Part shown: positions 21,866 to 59,294 of the stretch, one piece after another
Numbering within the stretch: position 1 is the first letter of the stretch
Layout: each line of letters starts with the position of its first letter
Source of the DNA: Adineta vaga
Lineage: Eukaryota; Animalia; Rotifera
Assembly: GCA_021613535.1 (NCBI GenBank)
Contig: CP075493.1
Location: forward strand, 1,178,001-1,242,000
Reading direction: 5' to 3'
DNA: 64,000 bases
Program-made: the position numbers and the translations under genes
The notes under the pieces: model-generated
Databases searched by the model: none
Seen by the model: the letters and a program-made list of their open reading frames with translations, nothing else
Told to the model about the DNA's origin: nothing

Positions 21866-23862
21866 CTAAATCGACGATGAATATTCGATAACATCAGCTA
21901 ATGCTGTACTATATGATGCTGGAAAATGATCAAACCACATTCTTGGATGAACAATCAAATGATCAAATTGATTATAATTACTTATACAAGCACGATAAGA
22001 AGCTTTTCGTGTAAATAATCCAACACGATCAGTTGAATATAAATGAATTATTGTTCCAGGTAAAACTAACTGAACACGTTCAATTGAATGATCTGTTGAA
22101 ACAATTTGTGATATTGTTGAATTAATATTTGTTCGATCTGATTCATTACTGATTGAATGAAATACTTGTCGACGTTTTGTTAATGTTCGAACAAATGTTG
22201 TTGTTAAAATACGAAATTTATTTAGATTACATTGATTTAATGCAAATAATATTCGATCACGTAATTGTTCTAATGATTGAAGTGATGCACGTGCAATCAT
22301 ATCAACATCAACAACATATGAATAAATAAAATGACGAGTTGATAAAACTAAATTTTCAGATAAAACAGAACCAGGCATTGCAATACCATAACATTTCAAA
22401 TGTGGATATGTGGATTTGAGTAATATTGAAAGAATACATGCAATACCAGCACCAAGTGAATATCCACATAAAACTAATGAATAGTCAGGATATTTAACAA
22501 AGATATCAATTAAACGTTGTAATATATCATCACGAATGTATTTTGCTGCTGAATGCATACCACTATGACAATATCCATTACCAAATAATTCAGTCTCAAG
22601 AATATCTTCAACAGCATCGATATCAGTCAAAACATCAGTTGCACTTAATGTTCCACGAATCGATATAATGATCGTTTTTTTCTCATTATCAGCAGCAATA
22701 TAAAATGGAGCTAATAAAACAATATGAAGAATTATATTCAGTTGAATGAAGATTTCTTACCTCGACCAAAAGCACCAAAAAAATTTGCATATAAAATTAC
22801 AGGTTTTTGTTCTCGTAATAAATATTGTAATGTTCGATATTGTCCACCACATGGATCATACAAACTATCTTCATTTTGACAACAAGGTATTCCACAACAG
22901 CAACAACAAAAGCCAATCGTTCGAAATCGCATAGCAAAAAGAATTCGTGGTAGAAACGTCCATCGATAATGATATGCTAATGAAAACCTATAATAACACA
23001 AATTCAAAAAATTGAAGTTAAAAATCTTGCATTTCTAACCATCCAAATGCTGATTGTGCATAGGAATTATAATAAAGACCATCTTTAATCAATTGTAAAG
23101 GAACATTTTCATAAATATCAATTGAACGTTCTTCATAGAAATCTTCGTGTTGTAAAAGAACAAGACCAGCAGCAAGATCACTTGTAACCAGATCAAATCT
23201 TTCATCATCAAATAAATATTGTAAGGTTTTAGTAATATTTTCAATATTTGATGATTGTCCACCTAGAATCAAACTATATAACAACAAAAATAGACGATAT
23301 TTCTCTTCTTACCATAACTTCTTCCACAACAAAATAAAAATTTAATTCTCATTTCCCATTTTTTCTCTGCACTAACAATACCAGTTAAATCCAGAGTAAA
23401 TGCCAAAATTATAAACAAAGACATGGCTAAGATACTACTCAAACAAACTGAAACAATCATTATTCCACGTAAAAGATTATCACATTGTTGAAATTCTCGT
23501 AAAAATATAATTAAACCAAATACATTAATTCCAATATCAATTAAAACAAGAATTAAACGAATGTAAATCAACAAGGGCATATGTCGACGTGGATAAGCAT
23601 TATTTATAGGTGTGCCTTTTAAACTAATAACAAAAATAATCAAAGAAAGAATGATTATTAAACCATAAAGAATACAAAGTAGATAAAAATAAACCAAAGA
23701 AAATAAGAATGGACATTGCCATTGAGAAGATTGATCTTCAAATTGTAAAATTGTAAATAAAATTAATAATGGAAATCGAAGAATAAGATCAATTAATGAT
23801 GGAATAGTTAAATCATCGGATGAAAAATTAAAACGACGATTGAATAAACGAATGGCAGGCAT
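21866..23862 (-). CDS. sn-1 diacylglycerol lipase-like (DAGL alpha/beta family, Lipase_3 domain)
   Basis: DAGL N-terminus MPAIRLFNRRFNFSSDDL, four TM helices, DLVTSDLAAGLVLL, PFYIAAD..IIISIRGTLSATDVLTD, HSGM, GYSLGAG, DMIAR, WFDHFP. Exons 23862-23313, 23262-23040, 22987-22761, 22710-21866. Confidence 0.92.
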
Positions 23863-24242
23863 GTTTTATTAAATAATAAAAAGTATGTTTTGTATTTCTC
23901 TTGCATCACATTCATTGATGTATAGTTCGAGAGGAAAAGGGCACAATAGTATAACAAGCTGTTGCAGTTAATAATATACAAAAAACAACTCGCAAATGAC
24001 AATGTTTTCATCGCATCATTGCCAGTGATATTCAGTAGAATTCTCTCATCAATAAAAAAAATAATAAAAACTTTATTTCATATCTTCTGTAATGATGAAA
24101 TTTATCGTTTTGAATGAAAAATTTTTTGTTGTATTTTATTGAATATTCTGAATAGAAGAATCAATGATGAAAATTAGATAGTTTATTTCCGAATCTTGAG
24201 ATTAAAATTTTAGTATAATACAACTATGTATTGATTAATTAA

Positions 24243-26259
24243 TTAATTAACTTTTTCTAAATGTTCTAAATCATCTGCTTGAATATGTGAAAATAATTCG
24301 TGTCGTAGTTGTGTACTTGAAACACCATTTGTATAAGGTAAAAATTTGACTGGCATTAATTCTTCGACAACATGTCGTGATGGAAAATCTGACATATCAT
24401 CACCACGAACATAAAGTGCTGTTTCATTTTCACGTAAATGAACAATGCATGTAACAAATGATGATGGATCTGTTCCAGCAACACAATAGACTTGATCAGC
24501 ATGACGTTTAACATTAATCATTCGTGTTTCTGTACCATCTACAGGCACACGTGATTTTAATTTATGAATACTACGACTATCGTGTACACCGACAATAACT
24601 TCTCGACCAAATTGTCGCATACGTTGAAGTAGAAGACGATGACCTTCATGGAATAAATCAAAACAACCAATGGTATAAACTTTATCAGCACGACCGTCAA
24701 TCCATATGGCTGGCAATGATGTACTACGTTGAAGAATACGTGGTGGTTCGTCAGGTTCATGGCCAATTGATGATATTGTACTACTACGTTCTTCTTTATC
24801 TTCTCGATTCTCATTAGAATGATCAGGAAATGGACTTAAAAAACCTTTGACGTTAGTTGGTGATATTCGACCAGTAGGAATATTTGTATAACTACCCGCT
24901 GGAGATAAAGATGGACTTGGAGGTGGATTATTTAAATGACTTCGTTTTTCATTCTAAAAAAATGTTGTATTACAGAATATGTTAATTTCTAATACTGATA
25001 AGGAAACATACTTCTCGTGTTATTGAATCAACTGTCATTGCTCGACTACGTGATTGAGCATTATCAAAATTATATGCATTAAGAACTCCAATTGTTTTTT
25101 GTATTGGTGACGATGGTGGAAGAGTATCTGGTGTTACTTTAATTGTAACCTTTTTTTTTCTATCTTTCTTTTCTCTTGCTTCTAATTTTTTCGCTAATGA
25201 TGCATAAGCTAAACGAATTGTTAATGCAAAACAAATGATTCCAGCTATTCCAGCTAAAAACGAAGAAAAGAAAAACGAACATCCGAATAAAACTACAGAT
25301 TAAGTTCGTTGACTTACACCAATGAGAAAATGGCTTTAAATGGCCTGTTGATAAACATAAAAATGCCAAACCTGTTGATTCAAGTTTTTCTTTTAATTTT
25401 CCTTCCATAGCTGCTGCTGTTGAACCTTGAGTAGAGATTCTAAATCATATAGATAATGGATTGAAATTATTTCTGTGATTGTTTAGTAAATCTTACTGAT
25501 TTTTCTTCAGTGACGCATAGAAATAATCTTGAACTCGAACAACACCAATTGCTGTTTCTAATGCAATGATTGTATAACACAGAAGAATAAAGCAGATAGA
25601 AAGCGATAATGATGTTTCTTCAAAATACGTTTCTTGTAAAATAGTCCAAAGACAGAAAATATTAACAATTTTATCACAAAATGCATCCATAAAACCACCT
25701 AACAATGGATCATCAATATTATCACCATAGATACGTTTTTGTACTTTAGCAACAATACCATCAACATGATCAAGAAAATCATGAAACAAAACGAGGATAC
25801 ATGCGCACACAGGATAATTATATCTAGAGAGACAATTCGTTAGATCGCTCAGTTCTTTCAATATACATACTTTAAACACCAAGCAATAGGAATTATAAGA
25901 AGTGTTCGAGAATAAGTAACAATATTTGCATTGAATACTGTTATAGTTTTGTCAGCAATTTGAATAAAACGTGGAATACGAGCCATATATGGTGAAAGAT
26001 GTATTTGAAGTGGAGTATACATATATAAATCATACCATTGCACCTATATTCTCAAACAAACAAACAATACATTCTTTTATAGTTGATCTTCGTTATTTTT
26101 ACCATACGAAACATAACAGATTCAATACCATGGCTGACTATTGTCAATAGACTAAGAAGAAATTGAGCTACAATTAATAGCCATTTGAAGTCTAATAAAA
26201 GTCAAATTAAAAAGATAACGTAGATTATAACATTCCATACTAGATTGAAGTTTATTCAT
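24243..26259 (-). CDS. Bifunctional CDP-alcohol phosphatidyltransferase (PgsA-like) / HxGH cytidylyltransferase (TagD-like) fusion, 560 aa
   Basis: Seven phase-compatible exons: 26259-26241, 26191-26103, 26043-25871, 25823-25497, 25439-25318, 25253-25012, 24953-24243 (1683 nt). ANIVTYSR, DFLDHVDGIVAK..LGGFMDAFCDK and AAAMEGKLKE mark the CDP-AP domain. VYTIGCFDLFHEGH, VIVGVHD, RGDD and YTNGVSSTQLR mark the cytidylyltransferase domain. Confidence 0.9.
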
Positions 26260-28210
26260 GAGTACAGATATTTAATTTTAAACTGAAAACAAGAATAGGT
26301 CAGAGGACTGCTTATATACACTGTTAGAATTTATTTGCATTCACTCGAAAGACTCAAAATATAGATAAAAAAAAGTAGAAACACGGACAATCTATGCTGT
26401 AATGACGATAAACTAACCTATTTGAAAACAAAGAAATAGAACATTTTTTTTGTAGTCATTTTCAAACATAACATAAATAGAAAGATTTTAGATTATGAAA
26501 ACTATATAAAATATTCTGGTCTTACACGCTAGATATTTTTACTTACTCGATTTAATTTCCATATTATTAGTTAATAGTTGCTGAGTTCTGTAGTTTATAT
26601 TAAAAATGAAATCTAATTTTGCTCGTAAACGGTTTCAACTTGATCTAATAAATAGATATGAGAAAGTACCATCTGTTATATTTTTTGAAATTTTATTAAA
26701 AACCTTGGAAAGAAAGGCCCAAGGAAGATTATTAATGCAACGACAACATATAACAAGATAACAAGCAAGCACAGACAATAATAGCAGTATACAGAATTGA
26801 TTTTTAACTAGACAATTTTTAAAGTTTTTTATGCAAGTTATTGTGAGAATATAATAACAATGACTAGATAAATAGACAGATGTTTTGAGGTGAATCATTT
26901 ACATAGTGTTATTGGTTGTTATTGAATATATTAAAGCTAATTGAAAAAACAAAATAAATAATACACTTATCATAATTCGTCATAGGTTATCTAATTTTGA
27001 TACCCTGTTTAACAATAGTGACTAATATTAATTATAAATGTAAATCAATAAACTGTAATTTTTATGACATCTGACTATATACGATTTTGCAAGACGTCTT
27101 ACATGGACACCTACTCCGTATTTTATAAAATTACATTATGCAATACAATCATCTTAATCGAACTCCACGTCTGTTAAAGAAAAGTTATTTGTGAACTTTC
27201 ACAAAATTTGATTTTCTACATGAAGCTTGGTTCAAATCGTAAAATTAAGATTGTTATTACCAGTATGATTATAGAAAACTCGACAAAGGAAGAAAAAATC
27301 TTGTTCAATCATAAAACAAGCACATCAATCCGTATTATTACGGACCAGGAGGTACGCATTAAACCATACTCAACCGTAAAAATAGATCGATCATAGATAA
27401 AAAATTGATTTCTTTCTACTTTAGAAAAAAATGCAATAAGATCATTGTATGCTTCTTTTTGGACCTTTTTGTGGGCATGAGCCCTGTGTTGAAAAATATT
27501 GCTCTAGTATCGATTAGAAATCATCCTATTTTGTCAAAAGCAAGAATTAAAGTTCCAGAAATATTATCAGTAAACGAAAACAACTGTAATTAGTGGATTT
27601 TGCAGAAGGTTTCACGCTCTCATCAGTGAACAACATCTCATGTGGCAAATCTTACTTTGCGATCTATTACGTGAACATTTACGGCTTTCCTTTGTTCGTT
27701 AAATCAAACATTGAACTAAATCTATTTTTGTTATAATGTGTGTATTTATGTTTTTCTTCGGATTTTTCTTGAAAACTTAGAAACCAGATATATTTAACTT
27801 TAGATAGAAGATAAAGACCTTAACTTTTTGCTGTAAAATATCTGAAAATCAATAACATTTGATAAGTTTCTTCTAATTAAAGTATTCTAAATTCGTTGGA
27901 GAATATATATTGACAAAGTATGAACAGAATCGTCTTAGAACGATCCGTAGCAAAAATTGTTCATTTTCAATTTCTTTTTCTTTGTTTGTGTTTGACTGAT
28001 CATTATCAGCTAAGTTAACTTAGCTATTTATATTATAAAAAGAATAGAAATAACAAGCAAGAAAAAAAAGAGATTGTCAGATATTTTAGCACAGTAGATT
28101 GAATTCAAGACAAGGAAAAGCGATTCGATTATGCTTTTCTTCCAAATGTATAATAAGAAATGAAGTGCGTTAAATATATATGTATATAAGTATATCACAC
28201 AAGATTAACA

Positions 28211-31200: not shown

Positions 31201-33402
31201 ATATTTATATCTATGAACATTTGACACAAGTCATCAACATGCCATTAACCCCTCTGTACGTGTTTAGTATATATATATATTGAATAGTAAATCAATACGA
31301 CGCCCATCTCCATTCAAATAGATTTTGTAAGAAATCTTAATGAAGATAAAAAGAAAAACTTACTTTACGATTTTGTGGTGATGTCGAAGTTTTTTGTTGG
31401 TATTGAGTATTATTGTTATAATTTGTTTTCTTTTGTCGTTTGGATGTTGATGTTGTACTTGTTATACTTTCTGCTCGTTCAATGCCAGTTCCATTAACGA
31501 TTTGTCGAGTTTCAGATGAATCTTTTTGATTGTACCGTTTCCTATGATGATGTTTAATAGTTAATTGAATTCGTGCAAGGTAATATTGAAGAATTGAAAA
31601 TGCATGCAAAAAGGAAAATAAAGAAAATATGCCCACCCTTCTTCTCCTATTGATGCAACATACGATCGTGATGGTGATTGTTCTTTTCCACTATGTGAAA
31701 GAAGTTCTGAAGCTGAATTTAATTGTTGTTGTTTATTAAGAGTCGCTAATGAAGCAGTCAACGGTAACATCAGAGAAGAAGGATTTTTTTGATTATTCAT
31801 ATTATTTGTATTCGGTGGACTTGGTGATAATTGAGCATTAGGTGTGGAAAAAACGACTGAATCAATATTTGTATTACTTGTTGAAACATGTGGTGGAGAT
31901 GGTGGTGGACTTAATGTTGGAATTGGTGGTGTTGGATGAAGTGATGGAACAATCGTTTTCGATGTTGTTGTTGGTGGTGGTGGGGATGATGGTGTTAATG
32001 CATGTGTATTTGCAATAATAATACTTGAATTTTCTCCATCGGCTAATGAAATATTTTCAAAGTTTGTAACAATCGGTTCAGTTTGATGTGAAAGACCAGC
32101 ATTCGTTGTACCTTTTGCAAGTAAATATTTTTTGATACGTCGTTTGGATGAGGATGGAGTTTGATATGTTGGATATGAAGTAACGGCTGAATAGGATGAA
32201 TTTTTATCAAGAATTGTTGATGATGGTTTACTTATATAACTATGATCATCATATAATCGAGTTGCTGCTGTTGCTGCTGTTGTTGTCGTTCCACTATCAG
32301 TTGGATAACTTAGGTCATTGTATGTTGGTCGAACATGTTCTTTCGATTTTGCACGTAAATAATCATAATTATATGTTGGTGGCGGTGATAGAGGTGATTG
32401 AGGTAGAATAGGTCGATTGATATTATCATTTATTGTTGATGTGATTGGATTTGTTGGTAAATGATAACTAAAATAATGTGAATCTTTTCTTGTTGGTGTT
32501 GTTGGAGGAATATTTGATGAGTGTTGATGATGATCATCATCATCTTTATAATTTGTTATTTGATCAAGACGTTTAAATGAATTCGCTTTCAATAAATTTG
32601 TCATCGAACGATTTTTTGAATCTGTACGTCCAATCATTGTATCTTTCACACGAGTATTAAAAACTAAATCTTTCAATTGATCAATACGAGCTTTACGTTC
32701 AGTTGGAGTCGAAAATTTTTCTTCATTTGGTGTCGGAGGTGGTGATTGATAACGTGATGGAATATGTACTGTTAATGCACTACCTGTATATTTTTTTTTT
32801 ATTTTTGAATTTGTTGCTGCTGCTGCTGCTGCTCCTGCACTTGTTGTTGATGAAGATTCAATATTAGACTCATGTGGAGTATAATGTGATGAATATGTTG
32901 GACGATAATTACTTGATGAATCATAATGATGTGGATTATGAATAGTTAATTGTGGCTGTTGACTAGAATGATTTGTTTTCGAACTTTGTTGTTGGATTTG
33001 TGATGAAGATGAGGATGAAGATGGTTGAGATTGATTGATTGAACCTCGTCGTTCACTCGGTGCGCGATCTTCATTATAAAAACCAACTAATGATTGAGCT
33101 TGATGAAAAGTTGATGCAAATTTCTTTTTCAATTGGCGTGGTTTTGTAATATGGCACCATATTGGTGCAATATTTGCATATTTTCGTGCCAATTGACTTG
33201 GTGATGAATAACTCCATGTAGGAGAAGCAACAACAGGCGTTGTAGATGTTGACGTACCATAATATGATGAATTCGAATTATTATTTGATCCTGCATTTGT
33301 TAAAGATCCACTTAGATTTGAACTATTCGTTGAAGAACTTGTATTTAATGGTCGTAGTCGATATGCATGGCCAGTCGTAATTGAACTACTGTTAGTTGTC
33401 AT
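28211..33402 (-). CDS. CLK: CDC-like (LAMMER) dual-specificity kinase, CLK/Doa, long-N-terminus isoform
   Basis: [97 protein letters not shown]. Large Ser/Pro/Thr-rich exon 33402-~31637; start codon uncertain. Confidence 0.93.
30749..30772. repeat. (TA)n microsatellite
   Basis: Pure TA run of about 11 units in a CLK intron. Confidence 0.85.
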
Positions 33403-35053
33403 CTGGATTTGTTTTACATGAGGATAACTACTGTATATATTCTGATGAAACAAGGGAGAAATGTCGATGCTGTTCTGTACTCGTTTTTCCTGATGATTAA
33501 ATAAGAATGAATAATGGACCAGAAGGAAAAAATACGCAAGAGATATGTATAGATGAAAAAGAAACACCACTAGTTCTCTCGCTTTCTCTTCTTCTTCCTC
33601 TTCTCCTCCTCGCCTTCTTCTTCTTCTTCTTTCTTTTCTCTCCAAGTAAAAGAACAAGAAGTGTTGATATTGAGAAAACTTGCTTTACTGTTGTTATTGT
33701 TGTTGTTATTTTTCGTCAATCTGTTCTTTTCCTTTTCTCTTCCTATGTATTATCCTTAAACACATTGATATGATAGTGATGAGAGATTTTCTTTTCTATT
33801 CCTTCTTTCCTTCAGTATAGAATATCGACACAGACAGACAGACTGAAAGAAAGAAAGAAAGAAACACTGTTTTCAAAGTAATTATGTCTGTACAAAGGAG
33901 AAGAAGAAGAAGAAGAATATCGGAAACGCACGTCCAGTAGGATAAAGATAGAAAGAAGTGCTATCCTTTTATGTTCTTTTCCCTTCCAACGCGAGATATA
34001 CTCGAGTAATATGAAGAAAAGAAAAACAGAATATTTTACAGTTTATAATCAAAGAAACTCGATGCTACTGTTGTTGTTGTTGTTTTTGTTGTTATTATCT
34101 CTAATCTGGACAGTGTAGGAGAAAAGAATTAACGTCTTTTCAATTATATACCAAGAGAATAAATCTTTGTTCTCGACAAAGTTTAACAAATACGATAGAC
34201 AGAAATAGACAAGAAATGACACAGAAATAGATGGATGTATTTGTATTTTCCTGCTGTGTATTTGAAGGAAAAGTAAAGTGTTTCCACATGCCTATAACGA
34301 TAATTTATTAAAAACATACGTTTGAAAATAAATCAATTGTTTTCTTGTTAACTTATCAAATGAATTTAATTTTCTTTGAAAATAAATAATTAATGAAAAT
34401 ATATTTAACATCTGTTCTTTGTCGTTTTGTTTTTCATTGAATCTTTAATTATACTACATATAAACAGACGCAATAATATTAGCAAAATGTCAAGGTATTT
34501 TATTAGATCATATTTAGAATCGATCAAATCATTTCTATTAATTTCGATTCGATAGCAAACAACAACGACATAGTGACATTTTGACTGACGATTAACAAAA
34601 TCTTCATCGATCAAACGAGACTTTTTGTTTATGAGAAATATCAATATCAAGTCAATAAAAATAAGATATGTACTAAACAAAGATTAATATCAAATGAAAA
34701 ACAAGAGAAACAAACTTCTAGATCTTAATTATCTATAAGATAGATTTTCATTGATAATATCATCTTTAACTCTATCAATAGTGTCAAATTTAAGGAATTG
34801 ACTACAATTGATTAGTCTAGTAGTTTGTCTTTCAGGATCGATTCATTAAACAAATGAACCTTGAACTTCAAATATCATCTGTAGAAGATTTTTATGCATG
34901 AGGAGTTTGATTCATTATGCTTTGATATCAAGGATTAAGATATATCAATTATTTGTCATGTATTATTCTTTGCCCTAAAAAAAAGGAATGTATTTCATCT
35001 TGTTTTATACAAAGTTTTATCTTTTATCATTGGAAAAACAAAAGTAACATTGT

Positions 35054-50176: not shown

Positions 50177-51819
50177 TTAGAGATTAACTTGAAATTTTTG
50201 TAATCGATGATTATCACAATCAATAACAAATAAATTTCCTTGTTGATCAAATGTTAAACCATGTGGATATGCAAATTGATTTCCTTGTTGACCATAACCA
50301 TTACCTCCAACAACAACTGACCCTTCACGTGCACCTTTACACCAACGCATTATTCGATGATTCCATGAATCACTTACATAAACATTACCCATATGATCAA
50401 CAACAACTCCTTGAGGATTTGATAATCTTGAAAGACTATTTCCTTGTCCTTGTCCACCAGCAACAACAATACCTTCTTTGGCATCTTTTTCCCATTTCAT
50501 AACACGATCATTACCTGAATCGGAAACATAAACGGAATAATCTTGATCAACAAAAATAAATGTTGGATGATTAAGTTGATGAAGATATTCTCCTTTACCA
50601 TTTCCACCTGCAACAACAGTTCCATTTTTTTCTCCATCTTTCCATCGTCGAACTTCATGTCTTTCATAATCGGATACATAAAGATCACCATTATTATCAA
50701 TTGTTAATTGTGAACAATCAATATCTGATATGAGTGTTCGTTGATTTCTCCAATTATGACAAGATAATTTTAATATTCGTCGATTTCCATAATCACATAT
50801 AATTAAATGATTATTTATTTTATCGATAATTACATCTGTTGGACAATTTAATTGATCTAAACCATTTCCCCAACCATTTCCTCCCGCAATAATCTTACCA
50901 ATATTTGAATCAAATTTCCATTCTACAATTCGATGATTTGACGAATCAGCAATATAAATTGTTTTTTCATCATCATTAACACAAAGTCCATCGGGATAAT
51001 ATAGTTGATTTAATTGATTTCCTTCACCATTTCCTCCGACAACGGTAAGTCCATCTTCGTTCCATGTTGTATTTATATGAATATTTTTTGAGGAAGTATA
51101 TTTTCCTAGGAGAAAAAAAAAAGAAAATCGATAAGACAACTTCAAACATTGCTGAGGTCGTCAGTGTTTTGACACCTTCAACTTCAATGATGTCTCTGAG
51201 ATTTTATCATAAAAGCAACTACAGGTGTTTGACCTTTTTCTACTCAATGATATTCTATTGGAAGCCGATAGGATAGAATTTTTGAATGTCGTTAATTTTT
51301 ACCTGAAGAAACAACAACACGAATTCGACTAATAAATGAAGTTGAATCTTGTTGAATTGAAATATCTGATGGTTCATCTAATTGTTGTTGTAGTTGTTTT
51401 AATTTCATATCAAATTGTTTTAAATTAATTTCATTAAAATCATCTTCTTGTCGAATTTCTCGTATTTCATCCATTAATTTCATTAGATTAATTTCAATTT
51501 GATGAATATTTTTAATCGTATGTTGTATTAAGATTTGTCGACATTCATTCGATGTTTGTTGGATAATTTTCATTGAATCTTTTTCCCATTGATCAATTTG
51601 ATTTAAGAATAATTCTTTTTGAGAATTTGTTATTGGTTCAATAAGTGTTTGACGAAAATTATCACAATTTAATGCAATATGATGTAATTCTTTATTTAAT
51701 TCTTGTCGATGTTCAGTTAAATGATCGTAACAAAATAATTGAAGACAACCTTCACATGTAACTGCCGTTTTTTCTTTATCACATCTTATACAACGAGTTT
51801 TACTAAGTCGTGTTGCCAT
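50177..51819 (-). CDS. B-box-like/coiled-coil + NHL-repeat protein (paralog 1)
   Basis: Exon 1 51819-51303 (CIRC..CEGCLQLFCYDHLTEH plus coiled coil); exon 2 51105-50177 with repeated VAGGNGxG..QLxxP..YVSD..NHRI units. Confidence 0.9.
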
Positions 51820-57572: not shown

Positions 57573-59294
57573 TTATTCACTTTCAAGATCAAATTTTTGT
57601 ACTCGATTATTTCCCCAATCAACAACATAAAGATTATTTTCTTTATCAAATGCAATACCTGTTGGACAACTAAATTGATTTAATTGTTTACCCCGTCCAT
57701 TTCCACCAACAACAACTGTGCCTTCTCGTGATCCTCTCGACCAACGTATGATACGATGGTTATAACAATCAGCAACATAAACATTACCTAATTCATCAAC
57801 AGCCAATCCTGTTGGCGAAGATAATTGTGTTAAATTATATCCTTGACCATATCCACCTGCAACAACAATACCTTCTTTTGCACCTTTCATCCATTTCATT
57901 ACACGATGATTTTCACAATCTGATATATAGAGTGACTGATCTTCATCGATTAAAACATAACTTGGATGATAAAGTTGATTTAAATGACTTCCTTTTCCAT
58001 TTCCACCTGCAACAACAACTCCACGTGTATCTCCGTATTTCCAACGTGTAACTTCATTTTCTTCCCAGTCAGATACATAAACATAACCACTATTATCTAA
58101 TGCTACACATGAACAATCAATATTTGATACAATAGTTTGATTATTTGAATCATTATAAAGTGACCATCTTATTACTCTTCCATTACCTCGATCGCAAATA
58201 ATGAATGAATCATTATTTTTATCTAAAATTGCATGAGTAGGTTGATTTAATTGATTAGATCGATTTCCTTGTCCATTTCCTCCAGCAACAATTTGGCCAG
58301 TTGTTCCATGAACTTTCCATTTGACAATACGATGATTTGAAGAATCAGCTATATAAAGTTTTTGTTCTGCATGATCTATATAAATATCATCTGGATAAAA
58401 TAATTGATTTAACTGATCACCTTCACCATGACCACCAGCTATTGTTGTACCAAATTGCTTCCACTTTCGTCTATTTTCAGTTATCAATGAAGGTATAATT
58501 TGTCCTAGAGAAAAAATTCAAACAGATATTTATGATTTCATTTCATCTGTTCATATTCGCGAATAGAACTATCTAAATCGTCCCATTGTTAAATAGCTGA
58601 TCAATTCTAAACAGAAATGATTCAACTAAAGAATAGTAATTCTCTTTGTCTACATTTTCATTTTACCTTCGTTACTTCATAGAAAAGGTCAAAGTTATAC
58701 TATGTCATTTTATCTGATAAGTATATTCTGTTGATATAAAAGTCGTTGTTCTTTTTCTTGCTTACCAGAAAATGCAACAGCAACAGAAATTTTATTAATT
58801 AATTGTGTTGATTCTTCTCGGATGGTAATATTTGATAATTGATCAAGTTGTTCAGATAATTGTTTAGATTTTTGATGAAATTGTTTTAAATCATATTCAT
58901 TAAAATCATTTTCTTGTCGTAGATCACGTAATTGATGAGTCATTTTTGTTAAGTTATTTTCAATTTCATGAACATGTTTTGTTGTATGTTGAATTATTAA
59001 TTGTCGACAATCGGACGCTGTTTGTTGAATCTTTTTGATTGAATCTTTTTCCCATTGATCTATTTGTTTAACTAATAAATGTATTTGAGGATGGTTAGTT
59101 TGTTCATTCAGTGATTGACGAAAAAGATCACGATTGATTTCAATATCATCTAATTGTTTATTTAAATCTTCTCGATGATTCAAAAAATGGTCATAACAAA
59201 ATAGTTGTAAACAGCCTTCACATCGAACTGCTCGTTTTTCTTTCCCACATGTGACACAATGAGTTTTAGTCGATGGTATTGCCACTGATGTCAT
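57573..59294 (-). CDS. B-box-like/coiled-coil + NHL-repeat protein (paralog 2)
   Basis: Exon 1 59294-58766 (CVTC..CEGCLQLFCYDHFLNH); exon 2 58504-57573 NHL repeats; same phase-1 intron position as paralog 1. Confidence 0.9.

Follow-up and report, generated by a model that had tools for sequence, protein, structure and literature searches.

Can an animal activate a headgroup and transfer it with one and the same polypeptide, and if so, where did it get the gene? This question is raised by a gene on the minus strand of the bdelloid rotifer Adineta vaga, at 24243-26259 of a stretch of 64,000 nucleotides (contig CP075493.1, positions 1,178,001 to 1,242,000; we call this whole stretch the window, and coordinates without another contig name refer to it). 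In textbook animal lipid synthesis, headgroup activation and headgroup transfer are performed by separate proteins. Here, an original prediction joined a membrane cytidine diphosphate (CDP)-alcohol phosphotransferase to a cytidylyltransferase in a single chain, and suggested that the gene might have been gained by horizontal transfer and might bear on desiccation tolerance. We describe below the gene, its transcript, its relatives and its two domains, which together point to a conserved enzyme with two probably consecutive activities. A literature search found no study of this fusion architecture and no characterized member.

Gene Structure and Transcription

Read on the minus strand, the seven coding exons sum to 1683 nt, that is, 560 codons followed by a TAA, exactly as predicted. 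Their product is identical to a public entry, 'hypothetical protein I4U23_000287 [Adineta vaga]' (560 aa; hereafter P0169). The interiors of exons 1 to 7 correspond to residues 1-6, 8-36, 37-93, 95-202, 204-243, 245-324 and 325-560 of P0169, the four codons interrupted by introns give the residues expected at 7, 94, 203 and 244, and exon 7 matches residues 325-560 at 100% identity. Exons were searched singly, and P0169 was used for the full-length analyses after this exon-by-exon identity had been established. The six introns are very short (49, 59, 47, 57, 64 and 58 nt, in order) and a script check found GT..AG in six of six; the surroundings are AT-rich, with a G+C of 0.25-0.35 over the window.

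Exon 1 (26241-26259) starts with the ATG at 26259, and exon 2 (26103-26191) encodes an N-terminal hydrophobic helix, as judged from the splicing and the membrane-domain model. Family alignments place in exon 3 (25871-26043) a YDxYVYxPLQ..IPR block and the ANxxTxxR beginning of the CDP-alcohol phosphotransferase domain, and in exon 5 (25318-25439) an A-x-MEGKLKEKLES block, which contains AxxxGKxK. Between them, exon 4 (25497-25823) carries the catalytic core, recognized by motif and by Pfam. Exon 6 (25012-25253) contributes, by model and splicing, the final membrane helix and the beginning of a low-complexity linker (24699-25140), which is interrupted by intron 6 (24954-25011, 58 nt). This intron separates the membrane half from exon 7 (24243-24953), whose open reading frame (ORF) holds the remaining linker, the cytidylyltransferase domain and the TAA at 24245-24243. 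There is no in-frame ATG in exon 7 before the HxGH motif, so the cytidylyltransferase domain could not be translated alone from this exon.

The gene model was compared with public sequencing runs: 19 contain the region wholly or partly, and four (X1, X2, X6 and X14) were mapped over window positions 23000-27500. X14 covers the region without gaps at a depth of ~140-400 and shows none of the six predicted intron joints; unspliced throughout, it behaves as genomic DNA. X1, X2 and X6 are RNA-like runs, one from each of three studies, with zero depth in the flanks, below ~24057 and above 26170 (X1), 26321 (X2) and 25264 (X6). The junction 24953|25012, which links the two halves of the protein and which the original prediction had singled out for confirmation by RNA, is spliced in contigs of all three. 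The junctions 25253|25318, 25439|25497, 25823|25871 and 26043|26103 are spliced in X1 and X2, and the junction 26191|26241 in X2. All six skipped introns read CT..AC in plus-strand orientation and hence GT..AG in that of the gene.

One contig of X1 (record 1, 1136 nt) extends from position 24146 of the 3' untranslated region across exons 7 and 6 into exon 5, so that the cytidylyltransferase is physically linked to the membrane domain in the transcript; overlapping contigs tile the remainder of the mRNA. The 3' untranslated region extends over 24108-24242, with transcript contigs stopping at 24108 (X6) and 24146 (X1). At the other end, record 18 of X2 reaches 75 nt past the first junction, which takes the leader to at least ~26315 and includes an in-frame TAA five codons before the ATG (26274-26272). 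The predicted single polypeptide is therefore borne out by its transcript: the seven exons are transcribed as one mRNA.

Three other joints (24732|25204, 25253|25347 and 25786|25871) were considered as alternative splicing and rejected, since they come with differing letters and many mismatches. Two comparable joints (25260|25347 and 25786|25868) are present in the DNA run X14, which also speaks against alternative splicing. The odd joints fit a divergent second copy, one such copy being an ohnolog on contig 4, and they and the mismatched contigs probably derive from that copy or from another divergent one.

Distribution and Descent

An exhaustive phmmer search with exon 7 against 1.84 billion cluster representatives gave 44 proteins below 1e-30, many of them of 400-640 aa with the match at the C-terminus, and both Pfam domains are present in five of the five best long matches. 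The best database matches are Adineta vaga proteins, and the gene lies in an animal genome of ~101 Mb in 6 contigs. The names of the other holders were obtained from cluster look-ups and two word-index searches. They include the bdelloids Adineta, Rotaria and Didymodactylos and the monogonont rotifer Brachionus, more than 30 bivalves and gastropods plus a chiton, the brachiopod Lingula, the nemertean Tubulanus, three entries from the amphioxus Branchiostoma, and the calcareous sponge Sycon, so that no fewer than six animal phyla are represented. The Branchiostoma gene carries the two domains in a single ORF of 476 codons without interruption. The databases call the members 'uncharacterized' or 'unnamed', or give misleading names ('PCYT2' for two of the three Branchiostoma entries; 'HldE'). 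The same look-ups and searches returned no named fusion match from cnidarians, annelids, arthropods, echinoderms or vertebrates.

Intron positions were compared among the A. vaga, oyster, amphioxus and Sycon genes on the columns of a protein alignment. Three of the six A. vaga introns, at columns 153 (phase 0), 218 (phase 2) and 382 (phase 1), coincide with introns of Sycon, and the last one is also present in the oyster; five introns are common to oyster and Sycon, including two within the cytidylyltransferase domain. The nearest relatives outside animals are eukaryotic as well (Thecamonas, Nutomonas, Chromosphaera and Balamuthia): the alignment of the Thecamonas homologue spans the membrane half as well as the cytidylyltransferase (hhalign E 4e-64), and Chromosphaera and Balamuthia have the membrane domain at ~50% identity. 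The taxonomic spread, the common introns and the eukaryotic outgroups together show that the gene was fused and intron-bearing already in the animal ancestor.

An intron-bearing family has thus been kept from sponge to amphioxus, and we read its absence from vertebrates, insects and nematodes as loss. Such conservation combined with such loss suggests a distinct product or a channeled route that is invisible in the standard model organisms. As a side observation, the Thecamonas trahens protein (P0023) lacks the beginning of the transferase signature, and Ser and Gly occupy the sites of the two distal catalytic Asp, which reflects either a faulty gene model or a degenerate transferase.

The Membrane Domain

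Both Pfam families proposed for checking score above their thresholds in the whole protein: PF01066 (CDP-OH_P_transf) matches residues 75-240 with 31.0 bits (cut-off 22) and PF01467 (CTP_transf_like) residues 417-541 with 46.5 bits (cut-off 21). Exon 4 alone stays below the PF01066 cut-off, with 15.6 bits, because the domain is divided over exons 3-5. All the motifs that had been quoted for the two domains were recovered, those of the membrane half being A75-N-x-x-T-x-x-R82, D112-H-V-D115-G-I-V-A-K, G136-x3-D140-x3-D144 and A212-x3-G-K-x-K219. The catalytic signature, D112xxD115GxxAK..(15 residues)..G136xxxD140xxxD144, is encoded at 25673-25771, and D112, D115, D140 and D144 are invariant among 36 family members. 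It deviates twice from the reference signature (PROSITE-type: D-x2-D-G-x2-A-R-x(7,8)-G-x3-D-x3-D): a Lys replaces the Arg in rotifers and molluscs, and the spacer has 14-15 residues. In addition, the family has conserved blocks of its own (YDxYVYxPLQ, VRVQDYF and MEGKLKEKLES), and conserved charged residues (R190, D193, K217, K219, E220, K221 and E223) line the part following the catalytic signature.

The AlphaFold model of the full protein, built on a 24-sequence alignment, has two confident domains, 9-280 and 410-560, joined by a disordered and unconserved linker (residues 282-409, predicted local distance difference test (pLDDT) below 50). Modeled alone, the membrane half reaches a pLDDT of 86.9 and a pTM of 0.81. 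Exhaustive structure comparison by VIA-align gave Z scores of 14.1 with the phosphatidylinositol-phosphate (PIP) synthase 5d92, 13.5 with PgsA (7drj), 12.7 with PgsA1 of Mycobacterium tuberculosis (6h5a) and 11.9 with IPCT-DIPPS (4mnd), compared with ~9 for the ten-helix CHPT1/CPT1 and up to 9.1 for unrelated helical rows. Foldseek and the ESM Atlas agree on a compact six-helix CDP-alcohol phosphotransferase. Sequence searches of the solved structures, including profile searches, gave no match for this domain, so that its placement comes from structure comparison. On the predicted model, the membrane domain is a compact CDP-alcohol phosphotransferase, in which a long hydrophobic helix precedes a six-helix core.

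How far is this domain 'PgsA-like', as it had been called? The fold supports the term, with Z scores of 11.9-14.1 to PIP synthase, PgsA, M. tuberculosis PgsA1 and DIPPS; so do the four-Asp signature and the P/A-N-x-x-T-x-x-R and G-K-x-K motifs, which are common to both groups. The equivalog model of pgsA does not: TIGR00560 gives 17.3 bits for the oyster member and 22.4 for that of Sycon, far from its 109.1, and is unlisted for the A. ricciae and Lingula members. The NCBIfam model of archaetidylinositol-phosphate synthase is not approached either (23-33 bits, cut-off 180). PgsA and the PIP synthases further differ from the family by their signature spacer of 7-8 residues instead of 14-15, by having neither the extra N-terminal helix nor the YDxYVYxPLQ block, and by being users of CDP-diacylglycerol with no fused activating domain.

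The Cytidylyltransferase Domain

The C-terminal half contains a single PF01467 stretch (residues 417-541, encoded at 24303-24677), in agreement with the prediction of one HxGH cytidylyltransferase following the transferase. Its motifs are GCFDLFHEGH, with HEGH at 24650-24639, then RGDD and YTNGVSST, the last including the GVSST of the original prediction. The residues H426, G428 and H429 of HxGH, as well as R507, G508, D510, S536 and T538, are invariant in the family.

The structures matched by this half are TagD (1coz), HldC, CCT, the cytidylyltransferase domain of Fom1 and human ethanolamine-phosphate cytidylyltransferase (ECT). TagD is the best of them, with a TM-score by target of 0.83 and a root-mean-square deviation of 2.9 Å, and shares the HxGH, GDD[WM] and T-x-G-[IV]-S-[ST]-T motifs. 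In sequence, the best solved relative is human ECT (profile E 4.4e-20) and TagD comes next (1.1e-11). The term 'TagD-like' is therefore apt for the fold (the TM-score of 0.83 being normalized to 1coz), and less so for the sequence: exon 7 scores 32.4 bits, and other members 34-42, against the cut-off of 165.4 of the TagD equivalog TIGR01518. Identity with TagD, a free-standing bacterial enzyme, is 26%, and the Arg of its RTEGISTT is replaced in the fusion family by a Tyr (YTNGVSST) which is invariant. The NCBIfam model for rfaE domain II gave 49 bits, with a cut-off of 181.5. Fom1, from fosfomycin biosynthesis (5x3d), resembles the rotifer protein in that a PF01467-fold domain is fused to the enzyme of a neighboring step, and differs from it by its bacterial origin, its fusion partner (a phosphoenolpyruvate (PEP) mutase) and a weak match (profile E 1.2e-5).

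A Proposed Two-Step Mechanism

Why should these two domains be joined? Related fusions offer a clue. In P0257, from a marine protist, the two domains are fused the other way round, and its membrane domain falls into the same subfamily (hhalign 98.6%). The pair is found again in the further metagenomic proteins P0105, P0120 and P0122. Among other relatives of the cytidylyltransferase, the partner is a LicD-type phosphotransferase (P0095 and P0123), EF-hands with a CDP-OH_P_transf domain (P0430) or, in one case, a phosphatidylserine decarboxylase (P0101). This repeated and independent fusion to enzymes that consume CDP-alcohols suggests that the two domains catalyze consecutive steps.

We propose the following mechanism. 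The soluble C-terminal domain would condense a small phosphate or phosphonate ester with cytidine triphosphate (CTP), yielding a CDP-alcohol or a cytidine monophosphate (CMP)-phosphonate. The activated headgroup would then be released beside the active site of the membrane domain, which would pass the phospho(no)-headgroup on to an acceptor alcohol, freeing CMP. The disordered linker, of ~130 residues, would serve as a tether between the two, and the last two steps of a Kennedy-type route would thereby be placed on one chain. The solved six-helix members, AF2299 and the PIP synthases, have their active site and their two termini on the cytoplasmic side; if this holds here, the tether would sit on the correct side of the membrane. 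The activity of both domains, their sequential action, the topology and the substrates are what we infer. With a probability of about 75%, we conclude that the gene encodes a conserved eukaryotic bifunctional enzyme whose tethered cytidylyltransferase activates a headgroup for transfer by the membrane domain.

Several points weigh against this conclusion. The nearest non-fusion relatives, from protists such as Blastocystis, carry an N-terminal SPX domain instead (P0033, P0057, P0055 and P0244-P0256). Enzymes of the PgsA/PIP synthase/DIPPS fold mostly use CDP-diacylglycerol donors and phosphorylated soluble acceptors, so that the domains perhaps do not act in sequence, or the product is soluble. 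No NCBIfam equivalog model was reached, and the substrate is thus not readable from homology. Finally, one X1 contig has a 1-nt deletion in a run of nine A (25151-25160), which, if real, would break the frame between the two domains in that strain. This contig is a single one of low depth and X2, X6 and X14 are without the deletion; we therefore attribute it to a homopolymer error or to a difference between strains. The run of A lies in the Lys-rich start of the linker and varies between the sequencing runs, X14 having two frame-keeping substitutions there.

Two observations on the relatives may be added. The SPX-linked proteins hint at control by phosphate status. A reverse-order gene on another contig (L018 7366-9218) overlaps by 4 nt the preceding gene, which is P-loop-kinase-like (AAA_33, 25.8 bits, just below the cut-off); the other genes of this contig are without Pfam match, and the pair could be part of a three-step cassette for phosphorylation by the kinase, activation and transfer.

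The closest precedent for a two-step enzyme of this kind is IPCT/DIPPS from Archaeoglobus fulgidus and the Thermococcales (4mnd and 4o6m), in which one chain likewise joins CTP-dependent activation to a six-helix transferase using the activated product, and whose membrane domain superposes on that of the rotifer protein (Z 11.9, Foldseek E 1.8e-3). As the original prediction had rightly stressed, both the nucleotidyltransferase fold and the domain order differ: IPCT/DIPPS has a GlmU/RmlA-type domain at its N-terminus, whereas the rotifer protein has an HxGH domain (PF01467) at its C-terminus, behind a long disordered linker. The fusion family is, moreover, eukaryotic and intron-containing. With PCYT2, the ECT of the comparison above, and EPT1/CEPT1 the family would share the chemistry (CTP and a phospho-headgroup give a CDP-headgroup, which is passed to a lipid alcohol), as far as this can be predicted for the fusion. 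In the Kennedy pathway, however, these two steps lie on separate proteins; PCYT2 is soluble and has two tandem cytidylyltransferase domains while the fusion has one, behind a membrane domain, and the ten-helix CEPT1/CHPT1 are the poorer match for that membrane domain (Z ~9). The sequences are already public, and Kennedy-type chemistry and the IPCT/DIPPS-like logic of fusion are known; what is new is that activation relies on another fold, that the domains come in the opposite order, and that the membrane domain is divergent and specific to eukaryotes.

Headgroup, Acceptor and Alternative Readings

Which headgroup would such an enzyme handle? An ethanolamine-type one, phosphoethanolamine and 2-aminoethylphosphonate (AEP) taken together, has a nearly even chance. 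It leads, if weakly, because ECT is the nearest solved relative, because a relative is fused to phosphatidylserine decarboxylase, and because genes for PEP mutase and for a phosphonopyruvate-decarboxylase (Ppd)-like enzyme are found in the genome. Glycerol-3-phosphate is a doubtful candidate. Diacylglycerol, ceramide and a soluble phosphorylated polyol are possible acceptors.

The A. vaga PEP mutase is a spliced gene which scores 359.9 bits, above the NCBIfam cut-off of 319.55; it lies at G000:C2:1855205-1855933 (L005 1450-2199 and 2532-2738, minus strand), and its upstream exon begins like a presequence. Homologues 70-95% identical to it, among the best 120 of 5567 matches, come from rotifers, molluscs, cnidarians, a sponge, locusts, a barnacle and Capsaspora. 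With PEP mutase in many animal phyla, such animals can make the C-P bond themselves. The Ppd-like gene has four exons (G000:C3:5960270-5961544; L006-L009), each below the TIGR03297 cut-off of 312.5, with scores summing to ~353 bits. A search for AEP transaminase with TIGR03301 returned sub-threshold class-V aminotransferase exons only.

These genes bring up the most specific version of the proposal: a dedicated phosphonolipid synthase, which would make CMP-2-aminoethylphosphonate and move AEP to ceramide or diacylglycerol, giving ceramide 2-aminoethylphosphonate (CAEP) or diacylglyceryl-AEP. Rotifers and molluscs have both PEP mutase and the fusion, and AEP closely resembles the substrate of ECT, to which the cytidylyltransferase is nearest. 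Domains of the PF01467 fold, such as that of Fom1, can cytidylylate phosphonates (PMC6697681). In eukaryotes, activation and incorporation of AEP are currently ascribed only to the generic PCYT2 and EPT1 (PMC9765203), and the routes by which AEP is transferred to glycans have been described as unknown (PMC6994554). Against it, cnidarians, locusts, the barnacle and Capsaspora have PEP mutase, yet the two word-index searches gave no named fusion match from them. The architectures of 30 of the best 150 cytidylyltransferase relatives include no fusion to PEP mutase, a point which also weighs on the proposed mechanism as a whole, the sister group of the cytidylyltransferase in protists is SPX-linked, and the transaminase search gave the sub-threshold exons just mentioned. 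We therefore regard this version as tentative and, on balance, rather improbable. If AEP is the substrate, the enzymes will have been found for a class of marine-invertebrate lipids that has been known for decades and is now assigned to generic Kennedy enzymes; a true phosphonolipid synthase would account for the abundance of CAEP-type lipids in molluscs, and would lead one to expect them in rotifers, brachiopods, nemerteans and amphioxus.

An unlikely alternative, although it retains both activities, is that the product is a soluble phosphodiester, as in the archaeal IPCT/DIPPS and the CDP-glycerol routes: the CDP-alcohol would be joined to a phosphorylated polyol, giving a compatible solute or its precursor. 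The closest folds of the membrane domain (PIP synthase, PgsA and DIPPS) take inositol-1-phosphate or glycerol-3-phosphate as acceptors, the conserved basic and acidic residues after the signature (R190 to E223, listed above) are consistent with such an acceptor, and the cytidylyltransferase fold is best matched by TagD. We know, however, of no such solute from the fusion-bearing animals, which are mostly neither extremophile nor desiccation-tolerant, and the equivalog model of DIPPS (NF041135) gives 17.9 bits for the Sycon member, with a cut-off of 580.

Alternatively, the domains might not act in sequence at all, the membrane domain depending on CDP-diacylglycerol, like PgsA or PIS, and the cytidylyltransferase being separate or regulatory. 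The fold class and the ANxxTxxR and GKxK motifs do resemble those of CDP-diacylglycerol users. This reading nevertheless seems quite improbable to us, given that the pair is fused in both orders, that the cytidylyltransferase has relatives joined to other transferases using CDP-alcohols, and that its catalytic residues are invariant.

Weakest of all is the idea that bdelloids alone obtained the gene, from a prokaryote, and that it is linked with desiccation tolerance: foreign genes are numerous in bdelloids and both domain folds have prokaryotic counterparts, but the same fusion in molluscs, a brachiopod, a nemertean, amphioxus and a sponge, the three A. vaga introns with the place and phase of those of Sycon (one of them shared with the oyster), the eukaryotic outgroups, and a G+C which resembles that of the surrounding sequence leave it hardly any room. 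Rotifers have retained an ancient holozoan gene by vertical inheritance and did not acquire it from bacteria, and the suggested relevance to desiccation tolerance is not supported either, since the fusion also occurs in marine animals that do not undergo desiccation (bivalves, gastropods, a chiton, Lingula, Tubulanus, Branchiostoma and Sycon). A prokaryote-looking pair of domains in a bdelloid is thus not necessarily a foreign gene.

Second Copy and Neighboring Features

Contig 4 of the A. vaga genome carries another copy of the fusion (G000:C4:13664125-13664700), whose product, P0165, has 530 aa. It is 79% identical to the window gene over the stretch matching exon 7, and keeps the intron between the two halves of the linker at the equivalent position.

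Downstream of the window gene, the next ORFs on the same strand are found at 21869-22630, with a Lipase_3 domain (1.5e-13), and at 23269-23862, a hydrophobic one of 197 aa without Pfam match; together they may form a membrane-anchored gene resembling a diacylglycerol lipase. The RNA-like runs have zero depth over 23000-24056. Further away, the window has two NHL-repeat beta-propeller ORFs, apparently tandem paralogues, on the minus strand (50180-51145, 5e-38, and 57576-58487, 7.8e-35). Its longest ORF (31564-33657, minus strand, 698 aa) is without Pfam match at E 0.001, and is surrounded by the strongest G-over-C skew of the window, 0.195.

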